DNA of 64,000 nucleotides. It comes from Hyalangium minutum. Lineage in GTDB: Bacteria; Myxococcota; Myxococcia; Myxococcales; Myxococcaceae. This document shows positions 393 through 16,454 of the stretch, piece after piece. The stretch covers positions 186,001-250,000 of the forward strand of contig NZ_JMCB01000005.1 of the NCBI RefSeq assembly GCF_000737315.1. The letters are read 5' to 3'. The stretch's first letter is position 1. Each line of letters begins with the position of its first letter. The notes beneath the pieces are model-generated. The model searched no databases and had not been told where the DNA came from. It saw only the letters and a list, made by a program, of their open reading frames with translations. Both the position numbers and the translations under genes were made by a program.

Positions 393-1514
393 TCAGGGAG
401 CGGCGTTGAACGGATCCGACAGACTCGGATCTGTGAGGAACGTGGGGTCGGTGAGAGACTCCAGGAACGCCAGGACGTCCTCCTTCTCCTGCGGCGTGAG
501 GGTGAAGCCCCGCACGAACTCGCTCTGATAGGGGCTCGGGCCGGTGCCCTGGGCACCGGCCCGCCCTCCTGCCGCGTAGTGGTCCAGCACCTCGCTCAGT
601 GTCGCGATAGAGCCATCGTGCATGTACGGCGCCGTGACGGCGATGTTGCGGAGCGTGGGAGAGCGGTAGCGCCCGGTGTCCTCCGACTTGCCAGTGAACT
701 CGAGCAGCCCGGTGTCCGTGGCGGGATAACCTCCGTGTCCATCCACGTTGTAGAGGTTGGTGTTGTGGAAGGTGATCTCAGGGAACACCGTCTCCTTGCT
801 CTTCACCGAGTCGCTGAACGCGAACCCCTGGTGGCAGTGGAAGCACTCCAGGCGCTCCGAGAAGAACAGCGTCATGCCCCGCTTGGCTGACAGGGACATT
901 GCGTCCAGCTCGTTGCCGTACGTGTACCGGTCATAAGGAGAGCTCCCCGAGATCAGCGTGCGCTCGAAGGCCGCAATTGCCCGGACGATCGAGCTCAAGG
1001 AAATCGGCTGCTTCTCCTTCGGAAACGCAGCGGCGAAGAGCTTCGGGTACCGCGCGTCCTCCGAGAGCCGCTGCAGCAGCATCTCCTCCTGGCCCGCCAG
1101 CCCCAGCTCGATAGGGTGCTCGCCGAAGATGGGCACCAGGGCCTGGGCCTCGAGGTCCGGCAAGACGGGGTTGGCCCAGGTGAGGCTGGCGGCATAAGCC
1201 ACGTTGGCCAGGGACATGGAGTTGCGCCGGTGGGACTCGCCCGTGGAGCCGAGCGCCGTCGTCCGCCCATCCGAGAACGCGCGCTCCTGGAGGTGGCAGC
1301 TTCCGCACGCCTGGGTGCCATTGGCGGAGAGCCGCGTGTCATAGAAGAGGTGCCGCCCCAGCTCCACCTTGGCAGTGCTCATGGGGTTGTCAGCGGGCAC
1401 CGCCGGCTCGGGAAACCCGAGTGGCAGATTCCACTGGAAAGGCTCCTCCGCGTCTCCACAGGCCGTGCTCAACAGCAGCACCAAGCCCAGGCACCACCTC
1501 CGAGCGTCGCGCAT
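393..1514 (-). CDS. mbnH: MbnH-family di-heme enzyme (bCcP/MauG superfamily), lipoprotein
   Basis: Two CxxCH motifs (CGSCH, CFHCH), RNSMSLANVAY..LTWANP, PYMHDGS, lipobox STAC; adjacent to MbnP-like gene. Confidence 0.9.
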   Translation of the reverse strand: MRDARRWCLGLVLLLSTACGDAEEPFQWNLPLGFPEPAVPADNPMSTAKVELGRHLFYDTRLSANGTQACGSCHLQERAFSDGRTTALGSTGESHRRNSMSLANVAYAASLTWANPVLPDLEAQALVPIFGEHPIELGLAGQEEMLLQRLSEDARYPKLFAAAFPKEKQPISLSSIVRAIAAFERTLISGSSPYDRYTYGNELDAMSLSAKRGMTLFFSERLECFHCHQGFAFSDSVKSKETVFPEITFHNTNLYNVDGHGGYPATDTGLLEFTGKSEDTGRYRSPTLRNIAVTAPYMHDGSIATLSEVLDHYAAGGRAGAQGTGPSPYQSEFVRGFTLTPQEKEDVLAFLESLTDPTFLTDPSLSDPFNAAP

Positions 1515-1519
1515 GGCCG

Positions 1520-2389
1520 CTACTCCTTTCGGAAGAAGGTCTGAGCGCTCGGAGTCCCCTGAGCGCTGCCAAAGCCGAGCCCCAGCCGTTGGAAGATCGG
1601 AGCACAGTCCTCGTCCGTGCCCTCGGACATGCAGCCCGGCGCCGTCTGGGCCTGGTTCGTGTCCATGTTGGAGCCCGCGAACAGCGCGGCGACGTCCAGC
1701 ACCACACCGCTCGCTCCGGTGGGATCAAAGTTGGAGAGCTCCACGTCGAAGCGGTTGGGCCGCTGGCACGAGGTGACCTGGTTGGGGCCGGACGTCTGGC
1801 ACTCGGTGCTGCCCAGGTGGAGGTTGTGCCCGGTGGGCAGCCCCGAGGTGCGCCCGTCCAGGCGGATGAACTTGTAGCCCCCGGCCCAGCCCCAGAAGAG
1901 TGTGCTGACGTTGAAGGGCGCGCTGGCAATGGACGCGTCCTGGTGGTTCTTCTCGAAGGGCATGCCCACGGTGAAGCGCAGACCCACGTAGTTGCCTCTC
2001 GGAGCCGTGCCCACGATGCGGTCGTTCATCGCCTGGGTCCCGTTGGCGCACAGGCCCGTCTTGTCCTCGAAGTCGAGCAGCACCACCCCTTCCTTCTGCC
2101 AGGCTCCGTCGTCCGTCAGCGCCAGAGGCACTTCCTCGGAGGCCTGGTTGATCAGCCGCACGTTGTGCACGTAGAGCCGGAAGTCTTTGGGCTCGTAGGT
2201 GGTGCCCGTGGTCCCCAAGCCCGTGTACGTCTGCCCACAGGCGAAGGGTTGGGTGCCTACGCGGGGCTTGAAGGTAAGGGCCACGTCGATGGGGCCGTCA
2301 TCGGGATGATTGGGCTCGTCATCTCCACACCCGGAAGCCGCAAGAGCGGTGAGGACCAGCAGCAGGATTCTTTCGAGAGGGCGCGTCAC
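1520..2389 (-). CDS. mbnP: MbnP-family copper-binding lipoprotein (metallo-mystery pair)
   Basis: WGWAGGYKF (WxW motif), HLGSTEC, PGCMS, several Cys, lipobox ASGC; 5 bp from mbnH. Confidence 0.88.
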   Translation of the reverse strand: MTRPLERILLLVLTALAASGCGDDEPNHPDDGPIDVALTFKPRVGTQPFACGQTYTGLGTTGTTYEPKDFRLYVHNVRLINQASEEVPLALTDDGAWQKEGVVLLDFEDKTGLCANGTQAMNDRIVGTAPRGNYVGLRFTVGMPFEKNHQDASIASAPFNVSTLFWGWAGGYKFIRLDGRTSGLPTGHNLHLGSTECQTSGPNQVTSCQRPNRFDVELSNFDPTGASGVVLDVAALFAGSNMDTNQAQTAPGCMSEGTDEDCAPIFQRLGLGFGSAQGTPSAQTFFRKE

Positions 2390-2488
2390 GGTGTGGAACC
2401 TCCAAGCGGGATGGCTGTTGGCACAGCGGAAGGCGTGCGATTAGCAGCAGATCCTCGAGGGGCCCACGCGGCATGTTGCCGCAGGACT

Positions 2489-3217
2489 TCAGGGCGAGGC
2501 TACGACGGCAGTTGAGCTGGCGACATTGCGCAGCACTTGAGTCGCAGCATCCGAGGCCAACGCCGAGGTTCCATTCAGCCATTGATCATAGTGCAGGGTG
2601 AGCCACTGCTCGGACTCCAGCTGCTCCGCCGAGAGAGCGAGCGATTCGAGCGGCAGCTCCACGTTCATGACGCCCGAGCTCTCCAGCCGGAAAGGCTGGA
2701 GCGCGTCATCTCCCTGGGGACGTGCCCAGCCCTCCAGCACGAATGTCCGATCCTTCATGCTGCCATCCACAGGCAGGCCCTCGGCATCCGCATCCGCGGG
2801 CCCGAAGACGAGGTGGATGCGGCAATAGCGTCCCGGCGGCGGACGCAGGACCCCAAGCGTCAGAGGCTCTCCATCCGGCCGCTCCAGGCTGCTCACGGAA
2901 GGGGTTCCCAAGCGCAAGGGACTGGACGCGGTGTGAGCGTGCGCGGTGCCCACAGGGGACAGCTCTCGCAGCCAGCGCAGCGCGGTGGACTCGGGGCAGG
3001 GGATGAGCTCCACGCTGTTCACGGTGATGGAGGCCCGGGTCAGGGTGATCTGCTCTTGCCGATCGGTGGTGAAGTTCCGGGCCGTGCCTGTTGCCTTGGT
3101 GGCATTGGCGGCCTGGTGCGACAGCTTGAGCTGCAGTCGGATGCCCTCCTCGCGAGAGCCGCAGCCGGGCAGAGACAAGGAGACGAGGGCCGCGAGCAGG
3201 AAGGGGAGCTTCTTCAT
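2489..3217 (-). CDS. Hypothetical lipoprotein with AHAH motif
   Basis: Signal MKKLPFLLAALVSLSLPGC; VGTAHAHT; 4-bp overlap with upstream gene. Confidence 0.75.
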   Translation of the reverse strand: MKKLPFLLAALVSLSLPGCGSREEGIRLQLKLSHQAANATKATGTARNFTTDRQEQITLTRASITVNSVELIPCPESTALRWLRELSPVGTAHAHTASSPLRLGTPSVSSLERPDGEPLTLGVLRPPPGRYCRIHLVFGPADADAEGLPVDGSMKDRTFVLEGWARPQGDDALQPFRLESSGVMNVELPLESLALSAEQLESEQWLTLHYDQWLNGTSALASDAATQVLRNVASSTAVVASP

Positions 3218-10128: not shown

Positions 10129-12709
<2,581 letters not shown>

Positions 12710-12723
12710 GCCGCGGAAGAGAG

Positions 12724-12879
12724 AGGGGAAAGGTTGCTGCCCGAGTGGTGAAGCCACTTTTGGTTGGCTGACCAATTCAGGTCTGGAGCGGAGTTGAACC
12801 GCGTCGCTTATGAGGCGATTACCAGGAGCGTGTGGGGCCTCACCGGCCAGGCAGCTGAGGGGAAGGACGAAATTCCCCT
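12724..12879 (-). ncRNA. Candidate structured non-coding RNA with tRNA-like module
   Basis: Long-range stems gctgcctgg/tcgggcagc and ggtgaggcc/ggcttcacc (G-U pairs favour the minus strand) enclosing hairpins with CTCATAA and TTCAACT loops. Confidence 0.45.
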
Positions 12880-12901
12880 TAAAATCCTGACAGCGCTCCT
12901 G

Positions 12902-13372
12902 TCACTCCGGGAAGGTCGCCAGCGTGAGGGCCTCGGGCGGGCCCTTCAGCTCGCGAGGAAGCTTCAGCACCCCGGAGTGGTAGCGCCAGCCCGTCCCGTC
13001 GTGGCGGAAGTCCGAGCGCTCCACGAACGAGCGGTCCTTTCCCTTCTCGAACACCTTGGCGAAGAAGAGCACCTGCGCCACGCCCTGCTCGTCCGGTGGC
13101 CGGCGGTCCATGACCACCAGCCCTGGGAACTGGTGGGTCTGCAGGTAGGTGCGCAGCTCACGTGACGCCTCGGCCTCCGGCCGTTTCCGGTCCGGGTGAT
13201 CCGGGTGCAGGGACTTCCAGAGCCAGGCTACCTCGCGCATCGCAAAGGCGCTGTAGCGGGAGCGCATGAGCGCCTCGGCGTCGGGAGGCTCGGCCTGGCC
13301 ACGGTGGTAGGGCGCGCAGCACTGGCTGTAGCGAAGGCCAGACGAACAGGGGCAGGGTGGGGCAGGGGGCAT
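12902..13372 (-). CDS. ychJ: YchJ family SEC-C motif protein
   Basis: CPCSSG..YSQCC, EALMRSRYSAF, FVERSDF..W.Y. Confidence 0.92.
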   Translation of the reverse strand: MPPAPPCPCSSGLRYSQCCAPYHRGQAEPPDAEALMRSRYSAFAMREVAWLWKSLHPDHPDRKRPEAEASRELRTYLQTHQFPGLVVMDRRPPDEQGVAQVLFFAKVFEKGKDRSFVERSDFRHDGTGWRYHSGVLKLPRELKGPPEALTLATFPE

Positions 13373-15029: not shown

Positions 15030-16454
15030 TCAGAACTGCAGGTAGACGTACGGCCGGGCCTCGACCGAGGCCAGGTGGCGGATGCCCAAGCCGATTCCCA
15101 CCAGCACCACCGCGCGCACCGGAACGGGCAGACGTACGAAGAGCGTCCCCCCGAGCTCGTAGAGCTTCATCGGCAGCGCGTGGCTTACCACCGCAACGGC
15201 GAGCATGATCCACACCAGCATGCTCACGTTGGCCAGCCCCGGGATGAACAAGAGCATGCGCTCGTAGAACTCGGCCGCGTGCGTCATGTCCGGTGCCCGG
15301 AACACCACGCGCGTCAGCACCACCAGCGTGAACGTGAAGAGCATCCCCACGCCCGCGCGGAGCCAGCTCACCGACTCCTTCTCCGGCCGTCCGCCTCGGA
15401 TCCACCACCACGTGCGGGTGATGCACAGGCCCACGCCGTGCACGGCACCCCACACCGCAAAGCGCCAGTCCGCCCCGTGCCACAGGCCGCCCAGCACCAT
15501 CACCGTCATCAGGTTGAACAGCACCCGTGGCTTCGAGGCCCGGTTGCCGCCCAGCGGAATGTAGAGGTAGTCCCGCAGCCAGCTCGACAGGCTCATGTGC
15601 CAGCGGTTCCAGAACTCGAAGAGGTTCTTCGCCAGGTACGGCCGCGCGAAGTTCTCTGGGAACTCGAAGCCCAGCAGTGCCGCCGCGCCAATCGCGATGT
15701 CCGAGTACCCCGAGAAGTCGAAGTACAGCTCGAACGTGTAGGCCACTGCCGCCATCGCGCACTCGGCCGAGGTGTACGCCGCGGGGTCTCCGAAGACCGG
15801 GTCTACCAGCCCGCTCCCCAGCACGTCCGCGATCACCATCTTCTTCACCAGGCCCACCGCGATCCGGTACATCGCCCGGCCGCCCTGCTCGGTCGTCAGC
15901 GTGGGCACGTCGTTGAAGCGATCCAGCAGCGCCGAGGCCCTCACGATGGGCCCCGAGACGACGCGCGGGAAGAAGAGCAGGTAGAGCAGGTGCTCCAGGT
16001 AGCTGTGCTCCGCGCTCGCCTTGCCGCGGTACACGTCCACCACGTAGCTGATCGCCTGGAAGCACAGGAACGACAGACCGATGGGCAGGATCAGCCCGAA
16101 GGGCTCCTGGCGCACCTCGATGCCCCAGGGCGCCAGCAGCGACCGCGCCGTCTCGCGGAACAGCTCCGCGTACTTGAACGTGGCCAGCATGCCCAGGTTC
16201 GACACCACCGACGCCGTCACCAGCAGCTTGCGCAGCCGGGAAGACTGCGTCCGCGCCAGTCCCCGGACAATGAGGTGGTCCACCGCCGCGCCCCAGAAGA
16301 AGACCAGGACCGGCAGCGGTGTCCACACCGTATAGAAGTAGAGGCTCGAGACGAGCAGCACGCCCAGGCGCGCCACTCGGTGGCGGTGCACCGCCCAGTA
16401 CAGCGCGAAGACCAGGGCCAGGAAGGCCAGATAGGAGATGCTGGTGGACGGCAT
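15030..16454 (-). CDS. MBOAT O-acyltransferase (AlgI/PatA-like)
   Basis: LPIGLSF..FQAISY, YFDFSGYSDIAIG, FWNRWHMSLS.WLRDYLYIPLGGNR, GLWHGA. Confidence 0.95.
   Translation of the reverse strand: MPSTSISYLAFLALVFALYWAVHRHRVARLGVLLVSSLYFYTVWTPLPVLVFFWGAAVDHLIVRGLARTQSSRLRKLLVTASVVSNLGMLATFKYAELFRETARSLLAPWGIEVRQEPFGLILPIGLSFLCFQAISYVVDVYRGKASAEHSYLEHLLYLLFFPRVVSGPIVRASALLDRFNDVPTLTTEQGGRAMYRIAVGLVKKMVIADVLGSGLVDPVFGDPAAYTSAECAMAAVAYTFELYFDFSGYSDIAIGAAALLGFEFPENFARPYLAKNLFEFWNRWHMSLSSWLRDYLYIPLGGNRASKPRVLFNLMTVMVLGGLWHGADWRFAVWGAVHGVGLCITRTWWWIRGGRPEKESVSWLRAGVGMLFTFTLVVLTRVVFRAPDMTHAAEFYERMLLFIPGLANVSMLVWIMLAVAVVSHALPMKLYELGGTLFVRLPVPVRAVVLVGIGLGIRHLASVEARPYVYLQF

Follow-up and report, generated by a model that had tools for sequence, protein, structure and literature searches.

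The spacer between the convergent genes ahcY and ychJ in a 64-kb stretch of the Hyalangium minutum genome (contig NZ_JMCB01000005.1; the whole stretch is called the window below, and positions refer to it) contains a structured RNA element on the minus strand that is real and beyond chance. On balance, we favour the interpretation that this element is an independently transcribed small RNA of ~125–130 nt and a divergent, YrlA-like bacterial Y RNA, best filed as a variant of the Y RNAs that lacks the D arm and is unlinked to rsr, and not as a wholly new class. A preliminary description of the locus had proposed an undescribed tRNA mimic. The element is indeed unannotated, but its relatives tie it to the YrlA-type bacterial Y RNAs, a class that the description had dismissed for want of its usual neighbour, rsr/Ro60, at the locus. 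That neighbour is absent here, yet it adjoins relatives of the element in other Myxococcota. Literature searches found no described myxobacterial tRNA-like or Y RNA.

Structure and covariation of the element

The predicted small RNA gene spans ~127 nt (12729–12855, minus strand, as for all RNA features below), running from GCUGCCUGG to CGGGCAGCAACCUUU, and homologues of 122–136 nt occur at 11 other loci. Its fold consists of two 9-bp helices, P1 and P2, around a 2×2 internal loop (CC/AC), which together form a rod, with three hairpins beyond P2. P1 pairs GCUGCCUGG (12847–12855) with UCGGGCAGC (12736–12744) and P2 pairs GGUGAGGCC (12836–12844) with GGCUUCACC (12747–12755), just as the preliminary description had drawn them. 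Both sides of the loop, CC (12845–12846) and AC (12745–12746), are invariant, CC being found in 12/12 sequences of the structural alignment described below. Folded as a minus-strand transcript, the 127-nt core has a minimum free energy of −53.1 kcal/mol and a z-score of −5.37 (reached by 0/200 shuffles), versus a z-score of −2.15 for its reverse complement. The rod also includes three G–U pairs (U7–G114, G9–U112 and G17–U105) that would be A–C on the plus strand, which was the original argument for minus-strand expression and agrees with these scores. The T loop likewise exists on the minus strand only.

Beyond P2, the 5' strand continues as a linker, J1 (12819–12835; CCACACGCUCCUGGUAA), which holds an invariant ACACGC, a CCAC resembling the YUAY motif of YrlA (CUAC in relatives) and a GG-containing UGGUAA. 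The last of these looks like a D-loop remnant keeping two G residues, because the Rfam tRNA model aligns the counterpart of the CUAC...UGGUAA linker in a Ro60-adjacent relative (L041, discussed below), GGCU-ACUUCGGUAAG-AGC, as a D arm. There follows a variable hairpin (V; 12804–12818; UCGC-CUCAUAA-GCGA) that resembles an anticodon arm, and then a T arm (12788–12802; GCGG-UUCAACU-CCGC) with a TPsiCRA-type loop (GGUUCGAAUCC in relatives), which the Rfam tRNA-Sec and tRNA models align as such in L007 and L041. The third hairpin (12770–12783; GACC-UGAAUU-GGUC) takes the position of the closed, acceptor-like 'AS' hairpin of YrlA, and the CCA-rich linker J4 (12756–12769; AGCCAACCAAAAGU) stands where YrlA has its D arm. 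J4 measures 9–14 nt among the copies and cannot form a hairpin; in minimum-free-energy folds of the window copy and L007, its CCA is predicted to pair with the UGG of J1, at positions that show no covariation. The 3' tail, AACCUUU (12729–12735), is similar in relatives (A-rich, CC and a U run), and phage Y RNAs adjacent to Ro60 have a comparable ending, a stem followed by ACCCUUUCUC.

This architecture upholds the minimal tRNA-like module, a hairpin and then a T arm without a D arm, that the preliminary description had placed on the rod. The T arm is the only tRNA-like part: the window copy lacks an acceptor stem, a D arm, the anticodon-loop consensus (7 nt with U33) and a CCA-ready end. Consistent with this, ARAGORN called neither tRNA nor transfer-messenger RNA (tmRNA) genes in the whole window and the Rfam tRNA model did not match the window copy. 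No Rfam 15 family reached its gathering score anywhere in the window, with only noise at E ≤ 10 around the RNA locus, and 6S RNA and tmRNA had no match at E ≤ 10 within 12600–13000.

A scan for YchJ in species-representative genomes yielded 12 Myxococcaceae loci. The element lies directly after ychJ in a Hyalangium metagenome-assembled genome (MAG), whose YchJ is 84% identical to that of the window, in two Corallococcus exercitus assemblies, in C. carmarthensis and in two Myxococcaceae MAGs; after ychJ at the six Myxococcus loci of the same scan it was not found. Scanning metagenome contigs by motif contributed three further ychJ-linked copies (L023–L025) and two in unrelated settings, and two scans of viral contigs gave a single phage copy (L033).

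Twelve copies were hand-segmented and N-padded into a structural alignment (A3). Standard pairs fill 98.7% of its cells over 36 modelled pairs and 16/36 pairs are doubly changed (a value reached by 0/500 shuffles), with pairing dropping to 37–54% if the 3' partners are slid by 1–3 columns; as the alignment was fitted to the structure, these statistics lean towards it. From an unedited MAFFT alignment of seven copies, RNAalifold independently retrieved the rod, the T arm and part of the V hairpin. Every helix shows compensatory changes. The outer pairs of P1 covary (mostly G–C, U–A in L019 and C–G in L021), and P1 has another sequence in two copies on metagenome contig L037 (a and b, see below) and is ~14–15 bp long in L033. 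The second and third pairs of P2 covary, the second being G–C or A–U over the wider family (read by eye), and the AGGCC/GGCUU half of P2 is invariant. Among homologues the V hairpin is 100% paired with 6/8 pairs doubly changed, a stem of 4–8 bp and an unconserved loop sequence, the third hairpin is 100% paired with 5/6 pairs doubly changed, and the T arm has compensatory changes in 2/4 pairs. The two variable hairpins change completely in sequence and length between genera, keeping their pairing. The rod is near-identical and every hairpin shows compensatory changes across genera while the flanks diverge, a pattern that demonstrates purifying selection on the element. A covariance model trained on the 12 stand-alone copies alone (R1, with rough E-values) gives the window copy 112 bits and detects no other copy in the window.

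Conservation therefore covers the rod and all three hairpins beyond it (V, T arm and third hairpin), and several other details that had been singled out at first are specific to the window's lineage. The CAU triplet, taken for a Met-like anticodon, lies in a loop that reads CUCAUAA, CUGCAAA, CUCACAC, UCAC, UUCACG, CUGAAAC or GAAA among homologues. The ttggt/accaa hairpin can be read in the sequence but is confined to this lineage, and so are the gaggggaa/ttcccct repeats, which are present as described; the alternative folds built on gaggggaa are not supported. The ctgg/ccag closing helix, although in the sequence, is not conserved and was rejected: it consists only of G–U pairs in L010 and Corallococcus, is broken in L023 and L021, and competes in Corallococcus with the conserved third hairpin. 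A coding region was rejected as well, as the homologue lengths differ by non-multiples of 3 and the sole overlapping open reading frame is antisense to ychJ.

Upstream motif and genomic setting

A promoter-like motif precedes the RNA (12866–12891, minus strand), comprising GTCAGG (12891–12886), 16 nt, CGTC (12869–12866) and 10 nt to P1. In the form GTCAGR-N15–16-CGTC, 8–10 nt before P1, it is present in 13/13 stand-alone copies, including phage copy L033. By itself the motif is not uncommon (2.45 expected matches per 64 kb against one found, at the RNA), and its weight comes from its fixed position across unrelated contexts, such as L019, the divergent genes of L021 and the phage. The bases between and around GTCAGR and CGTC vary, and local hairpins use both blocks in differing registers, which argues for a DNA signal rather than an RNA structure. 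In the window, for instance, the lineage-specific inverted repeat AGGGGAA-UUUCGUCC-UUCCCCU (12858–12879) overlaps the promoter spacer and the CGTC block, outside the conserved RNA; other genera have hairpins there in a different register, with GTCAGG and CGTC fixed. We infer that the motif acts as the promoter of the RNA. We take a CGTC ~16 nt after an upstream hexamer to recall the promoters of extracytoplasmic function (ECF) sigma factors. Scans of the locus found no sigma-70-like promoter and no intrinsic terminator, and the motif was not found upstream of the tRNA array/HNH/Ro60 modules described in the next section.

The spacer measures 192 nt from stop codon to stop codon, and the element lies 46 nt past the stop codon of ychJ and 20 nt from that of ahcY. 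Gene calls agree with the convergent flanks first reported, the adenosylhomocysteinase (AdoHcyase) gene ahcY ending at 12709 on the plus strand (11339–12709, preceded by metK) and the YchJ_M-like/SEC-C gene ychJ occupying 12902–13372 on the minus strand. In 10/13 stand-alone copies ychJ comes immediately before the RNA in the same orientation, irrespective of what lies downstream. Beyond the RNA the neighbouring gene varies (ahcY in the window and L010, metK in L004, a GspG-like pseudopilin gene in L006), so the RNA does not travel with S-adenosylmethionine (SAM)-cycle genes, and the proposed link to methionine/SAM metabolism is not supported, two copies being in unrelated contexts altogether. 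Upstream of the L019 copy are ThiF-like and methyltransferase genes, with a MarR gene on its downstream side, and the L021 copy lies between divergent HupE-like and universal-stress-protein genes. The tandem upstream of the L019 copy (1140–2618), a small open reading frame, a ThiF-family E1-like gene and the methyltransferase gene, may constitute a ubiquitin-like modification set.

Other features of the ychJ locus were observed in passing. The ychJ stop codon is overlapped by a 5-bp hairpin, GACAG-GAGCG-CUGUC (12889–12903, minus strand), with AGGAUUUU after it, which might serve ychJ as a weak terminator. The GTCAGG block of the promoter-like motif supplies the 3' arm of this hairpin, and L025 has a compensatory GACG/CGUC version. 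In Myxococcus, the site after ychJ is occupied by an S-adenosylhomocysteine (SAH) riboswitch (RF01057, 60.9 bits; L001 3570–3643, also in L002, L003 and L005), followed on the same strand as ychJ by another ahcY that is ~40% identical to the window's. The metK-ahcY pair of the window is without an Rfam riboswitch. L005 (BNCN01000012.1) has the record title 'Comamonas sp. KCTC 72670', and its assembly may be mislabelled, since its ychJ/SAH riboswitch/ahcY locus is nearly identical to the Myxococcus loci in layout and sequence.

Relation to YrlA and Ro60 genes

YrlA RNAs are defined by a terminal stem, GNCGAAN0–1G near the 5' end and YUAY at ~nt 22–25, with V (less conserved), T, AS and near-invariant D stem-loops, and their gene lies no more than 4 kb from rsr, in the same orientation (Chen et al. 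2014, PMC4201824). The GNCGAAN0–1G motif resembles the GGUCCGA contacted by Ro60 and is a proposed Ro60 contact (PMC4201824). Binding by Ro60/Rsr and a T-loop pseudouridine made by TruB are further marks of the class. The YrlA of Mycobacterium smegmatis is cut by RNase P and receives CCA. For comparison we used Rfam RF02553, this published definition and Wang et al. 2018 (bioRxiv 10.1101/312249).

The window RNA and its family share with YrlA a length of ~100–130 nt, paired ends (P1 and P2 make an 18-bp terminal stem with covariation), a less conserved hairpin, a T arm, a closed acceptor-like hairpin and a U-rich 3' tail. The GNCGA-type motif on the 5' strand and the YUAY that comes after it at ~nt 21–25 have near-matches in the window, GCCGGUG and CCAC, and exact matches in relatives. 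The CC loop with its flanking G and GRNG falls in the same place as GNCGAA(N)G. GCCGAAG, an exact counterpart, is found in L010, L021 and L033, GCCGGAG in Corallococcus, and GCCGGAG or GCCGGUG in the others. For YUAY (nt 21–24), the window and L019 have CCAC, and CUAC is found in 9/11 other stand-alone copies, L033 and L037. Relatives adjoin Ro60 genes, in or beside tRNA arrays, and one is carried by a phage, as are the actinophage YrlAs.

These relatives connect the family to Ro60. On a metagenome contig (L016, extended as L037), three tandem rod copies sit inside a tRNA array. In copies a and b the rod holds a circularly permuted tRNA (T arm, looped-off acceptor stem, D arm and anticodon arm), and in copy c it holds a cloverleaf in normal order that scores 50.7 bits with the Rfam tRNA model as tRNA-Pro(UGG). 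The T, closed-acceptor and D arms of L037 a and b and of L033 follow YrlA's permuted order, and RF02553 gives 25.7 bits for L037 a and 18.1 bits for b, matching the T, acceptor-like and D portion. On one strand, L037 has a 37-gene tRNA array, an HNH gene and a TROVE/vWA_Ro60 gene, with the rod RNAs 5.1 kb upstream of the Ro60 gene on that strand; a flanking peptidase has its closest proteins in Minicystis, Polyangiaceae and Myxococcota. Three further contigs holding homologues of the L037 Ro60 have the same tRNA array/HNH/TROVE arrangement. One of these is a Polyangia MAG (L041), in which an RNA ~50 nt upstream of the TROVE gene shows a 7-bp terminal stem followed by GCCGGAGAGGGCUAC...GGUAAG, corresponding to GCCGGAGAGGCCCUAC...GGUAAG in Corallococcus. 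This RNA also possesses a hairpin, a T arm and a closed hairpin, with GCCUUCUCCAC on the 3' side (versus GGCUUCUCCAC in the stand-alone family). Its elements in common with the family are GCCGGAGAGG(G/C)C..UAC, GGUAAG, the T arm and GCCUUCUCCAC. R1 scores the L037 copies at 41–56 bits, L033 at 47 bits and the L041 RNA at 23.5 bits (E 0.0013 over 215 kb, a rough value), compared with 13.3 bits (E 0.3) for the phage Sebata YrlA. L033 is a viral contig with terminase, portal and Mu-F-like genes, the last with an intein, and its single RNA copy combines the exact GCCGAAG with a permuted tRNA-like insert.

The modules themselves show further features. In these Polyangia-like Myxococcota (L037 11950–20310, L039 4067–11527, L040 8274–11715 and L041 1164–5105), a tRNA array of 10–37 genes, an HNH endonuclease gene and a Ro60 (TROVE/vWA) gene lie on a single strand, with T-arm-containing Y-like RNAs just upstream of Ro60, a layout that recalls actinophage tRNA-array/Ro regions. 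The three tandem Y-like RNAs of L037 (13268–13729) are placed among four tRNA-Pro genes, and their anticodon-like loops (CUAUGGA, UUGUCCA and CCUGGUG) are partly non-canonical. In the same array ARAGORN reports a tRNA with anticodon UUA ('tRNA-Stop', 16118–16190), a possible ochre suppressor, and a permuted 'tmRNA*' (15391–15893) that overlaps ordinary tRNA genes and is probably an artefact. Directly downstream of Ro60 in L040 (12569–19954) are genes for a MoxR-like AAA protein (bpMoxR/AAA_5), DUF5682, VWA_CoxE and HEAT_2. The phage Mu-F-like head morphogenesis gene beside the L033 copy (1098–2762, minus strand) holds the intein splicing domain mentioned above.

Several observations count against assigning the window RNA to the YrlA-like Y RNAs. 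Its counterpart of GNCGAAN0–1G, GCCGGUG (nt 9–15), is two positions off, and it has only a linker after AS, in place of the near-invariant D stem-loop that relatives L033 and L037 a and b possess. No Ro60 gene lies on the same strand within ~4 kb: tblastn queries with D. radiodurans Rsr and human Ro60 detected no Ro60/TROVE gene, either in the window or in sequence flanking any stand-alone copy. None of the 116 listed matches to the Polyangia-type Ro60 is named as Myxococcaceae, in a search that was not exhaustive for that family, and the search with D. radiodurans Rsr gave only Deinococcus-like proteins among the matches listed (6815 in total). RF02553, with a gathering score of 69 bits, does not match the window copy or L007 at E ≤ 10, and the R1 match to the L041 RNA is modest. 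However, the Ro-adjacent phage YrlAs of Sebata and FuzzBuster themselves reach only 37.4 and 33.3 bits with RF02553, so its threshold of 69 is not discriminating outside the seed group.

The window copy further differs from YrlA in having just a GG-containing linker upstream of the variable hairpin, in lacking rsr over 64 kb and in possessing its own conserved promoter-like motif, and its family differs in an invariant stem core (the CC/AC loop, AGGCC/GGCUU and ACACGC). In the permuted copies the rod of the family joins the tRNA at the variable-arm site, and in copy c it does so at the acceptor ends, whereas the YrlA stem continues the anticodon stem. Reduced layouts are nevertheless already found within the Y RNA class, as Yrn1 of Deinococcus radiodurans (RF01053) also lacks a full D arm. 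Yrn1 combines a Ro-binding stem, a T stem-loop and an anticodon-like arm having a non-canonical loop with D-loop features and no V arm, a layout close to that of the window RNA (PMC4201824), but its gene is beside rsr and there is no detectable sequence similarity (RF01053 scores 14.6 bits on L037 c and nothing on the window).

Other known RNAs resemble the element less. Transfer RNAs, including those from permuted or split genes, have the T arm with its TPsiCRA-type loop in common with it, and full cloverleaves occur in its relatives, but the window copy itself is without the acceptor stem, D arm and anticodon loop consensus. The 6S, tmRNA and signal recognition particle (SRP) RNAs are likewise stand-alone structured RNAs, 6S and SRP RNA being rod-shaped and tmRNA having a T arm; the window RNA lacks their central bubble, tag reading frame and SRP domain IV motifs, and none of their Rfam models, that of SRP RNA included, matches it at E ≤ 10.

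Alternative explanations and implications

If Hyalangium and Corallococcus have no Ro60, the RNA must serve another partner. It is possible, though we consider it doubtful, that a Y-like RNA works here without Ro60, with the rod binding a different protein, possibly the ychJ product (a SEC-C zinc motif and an NTF2-like domain), and the tRNA-elbow mimic titrating or guiding a tRNA-recognising factor. The absence of TROVE genes from the window and the stand-alone flanks and of Myxococcaceae from the Ro60 homologues listed would fit such a role, as would the position of most stand-alone copies directly after ychJ, and the rod core is invariant over genera, as for a protein-binding site. However, the ychJ linkage holds within one family only and could be inherited synteny, no ychJ lies near L019, L021, L033 or L037, and the motifs of the rod agree with those of Ro60-linked relatives, in addition to the non-exhaustive Ro60 search noted above. 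We regard with similar reserve the broader proposal that the Myxococcaceae (Hyalangium, Corallococcus) may keep a Y-like RNA in the absence of Ro60, with a rod for some other partner and a dedicated ECF-type sigma factor driving the RNA.

It is improbable that the element acts in cis, as a structured 3' untranslated region or terminator of ychJ or as a two-way terminator for ychJ and ahcY. The convergent genes are 46 nt and 20 nt away and a long stem precedes a short U run, but this run is just 3–4 nt long, it lies 3–4 nt away from the stem, and the terminator scan was negative. Copies are also found with divergent neighbouring genes (L021), on a phage contig (L033) and within a tRNA array (L037), and the T loop, the invariant single-stranded blocks and the upstream motif would be superfluous for termination. 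Still less probable is a decaying tRNA relic (a pseudo-tRNA or old phage attachment site) or a precursor cut into a tRNA-like adaptor, for although relatives hold complete cloverleaves (L037 c), one copy is phage-borne and M. smegmatis YrlA is processed by RNase P and CCA addition, the window copy has no acceptor stem, anticodon consensus or CCA-ready end and is missed by ARAGORN, and the near-identical rod and compensated hairpins within diverging flanks indicate purifying selection.

Under the favoured interpretation, a YrlA-like Y RNA, the primary transcript would start at or just before P1 and end after the A-CC-UUU tail. The rod, including its CC/AC loop, the ACACGC block and the invariant AGGCC/GGCUU half of P2, would serve as a protein platform, and GCCG(R)NG followed by CYAC on its 5' strand is the likely docking site, most probably for a Ro60/Rsr orthologue. 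Ro60 is the leading candidate for the partner because homologous rods adjoin Ro60 genes. The far end carries a reduced tRNA mimic, made up of the GG D-loop remnant, the variable hairpin, the T arm and the closed 'acceptor' hairpin. Its tRNA-elbow mimic (the GG linker and T loop) may offer a handle to a tRNA-binding factor such as polynucleotide phosphorylase (PNPase), TruB or RNase P, on the model of the Ro-Y RNA-PNPase complex and of the modification of YrlAs by TruB and DusA and their cleavage by RNase P. The RNA could then tether or gate its partner while structured or damaged RNA is handled.

Bacterial Y RNAs have so far been found almost only beside rsr/Ro60 genes. As Y-like RNAs can also sit elsewhere, with a promoter-like motif of their own, this family escapes both rsr-anchored searches and the Rfam model, and R1 is an immediate means of annotating it. 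The fixed upstream motif predicts a specific regulator. One protein-binding rod can carry interchangeable tRNA modules, whether normally ordered, circularly permuted or lacking the D arm, and this series on a single stem could be used to learn which component of the tRNA mimic its function depends on. If there is indeed no Ro60, this would be the first Y-RNA-derived ribonucleoprotein working without it. The Y RNA class would in any case extend to the Myxococcota, which are social, developmental and predatory bacteria with large RNA-repair gene sets.

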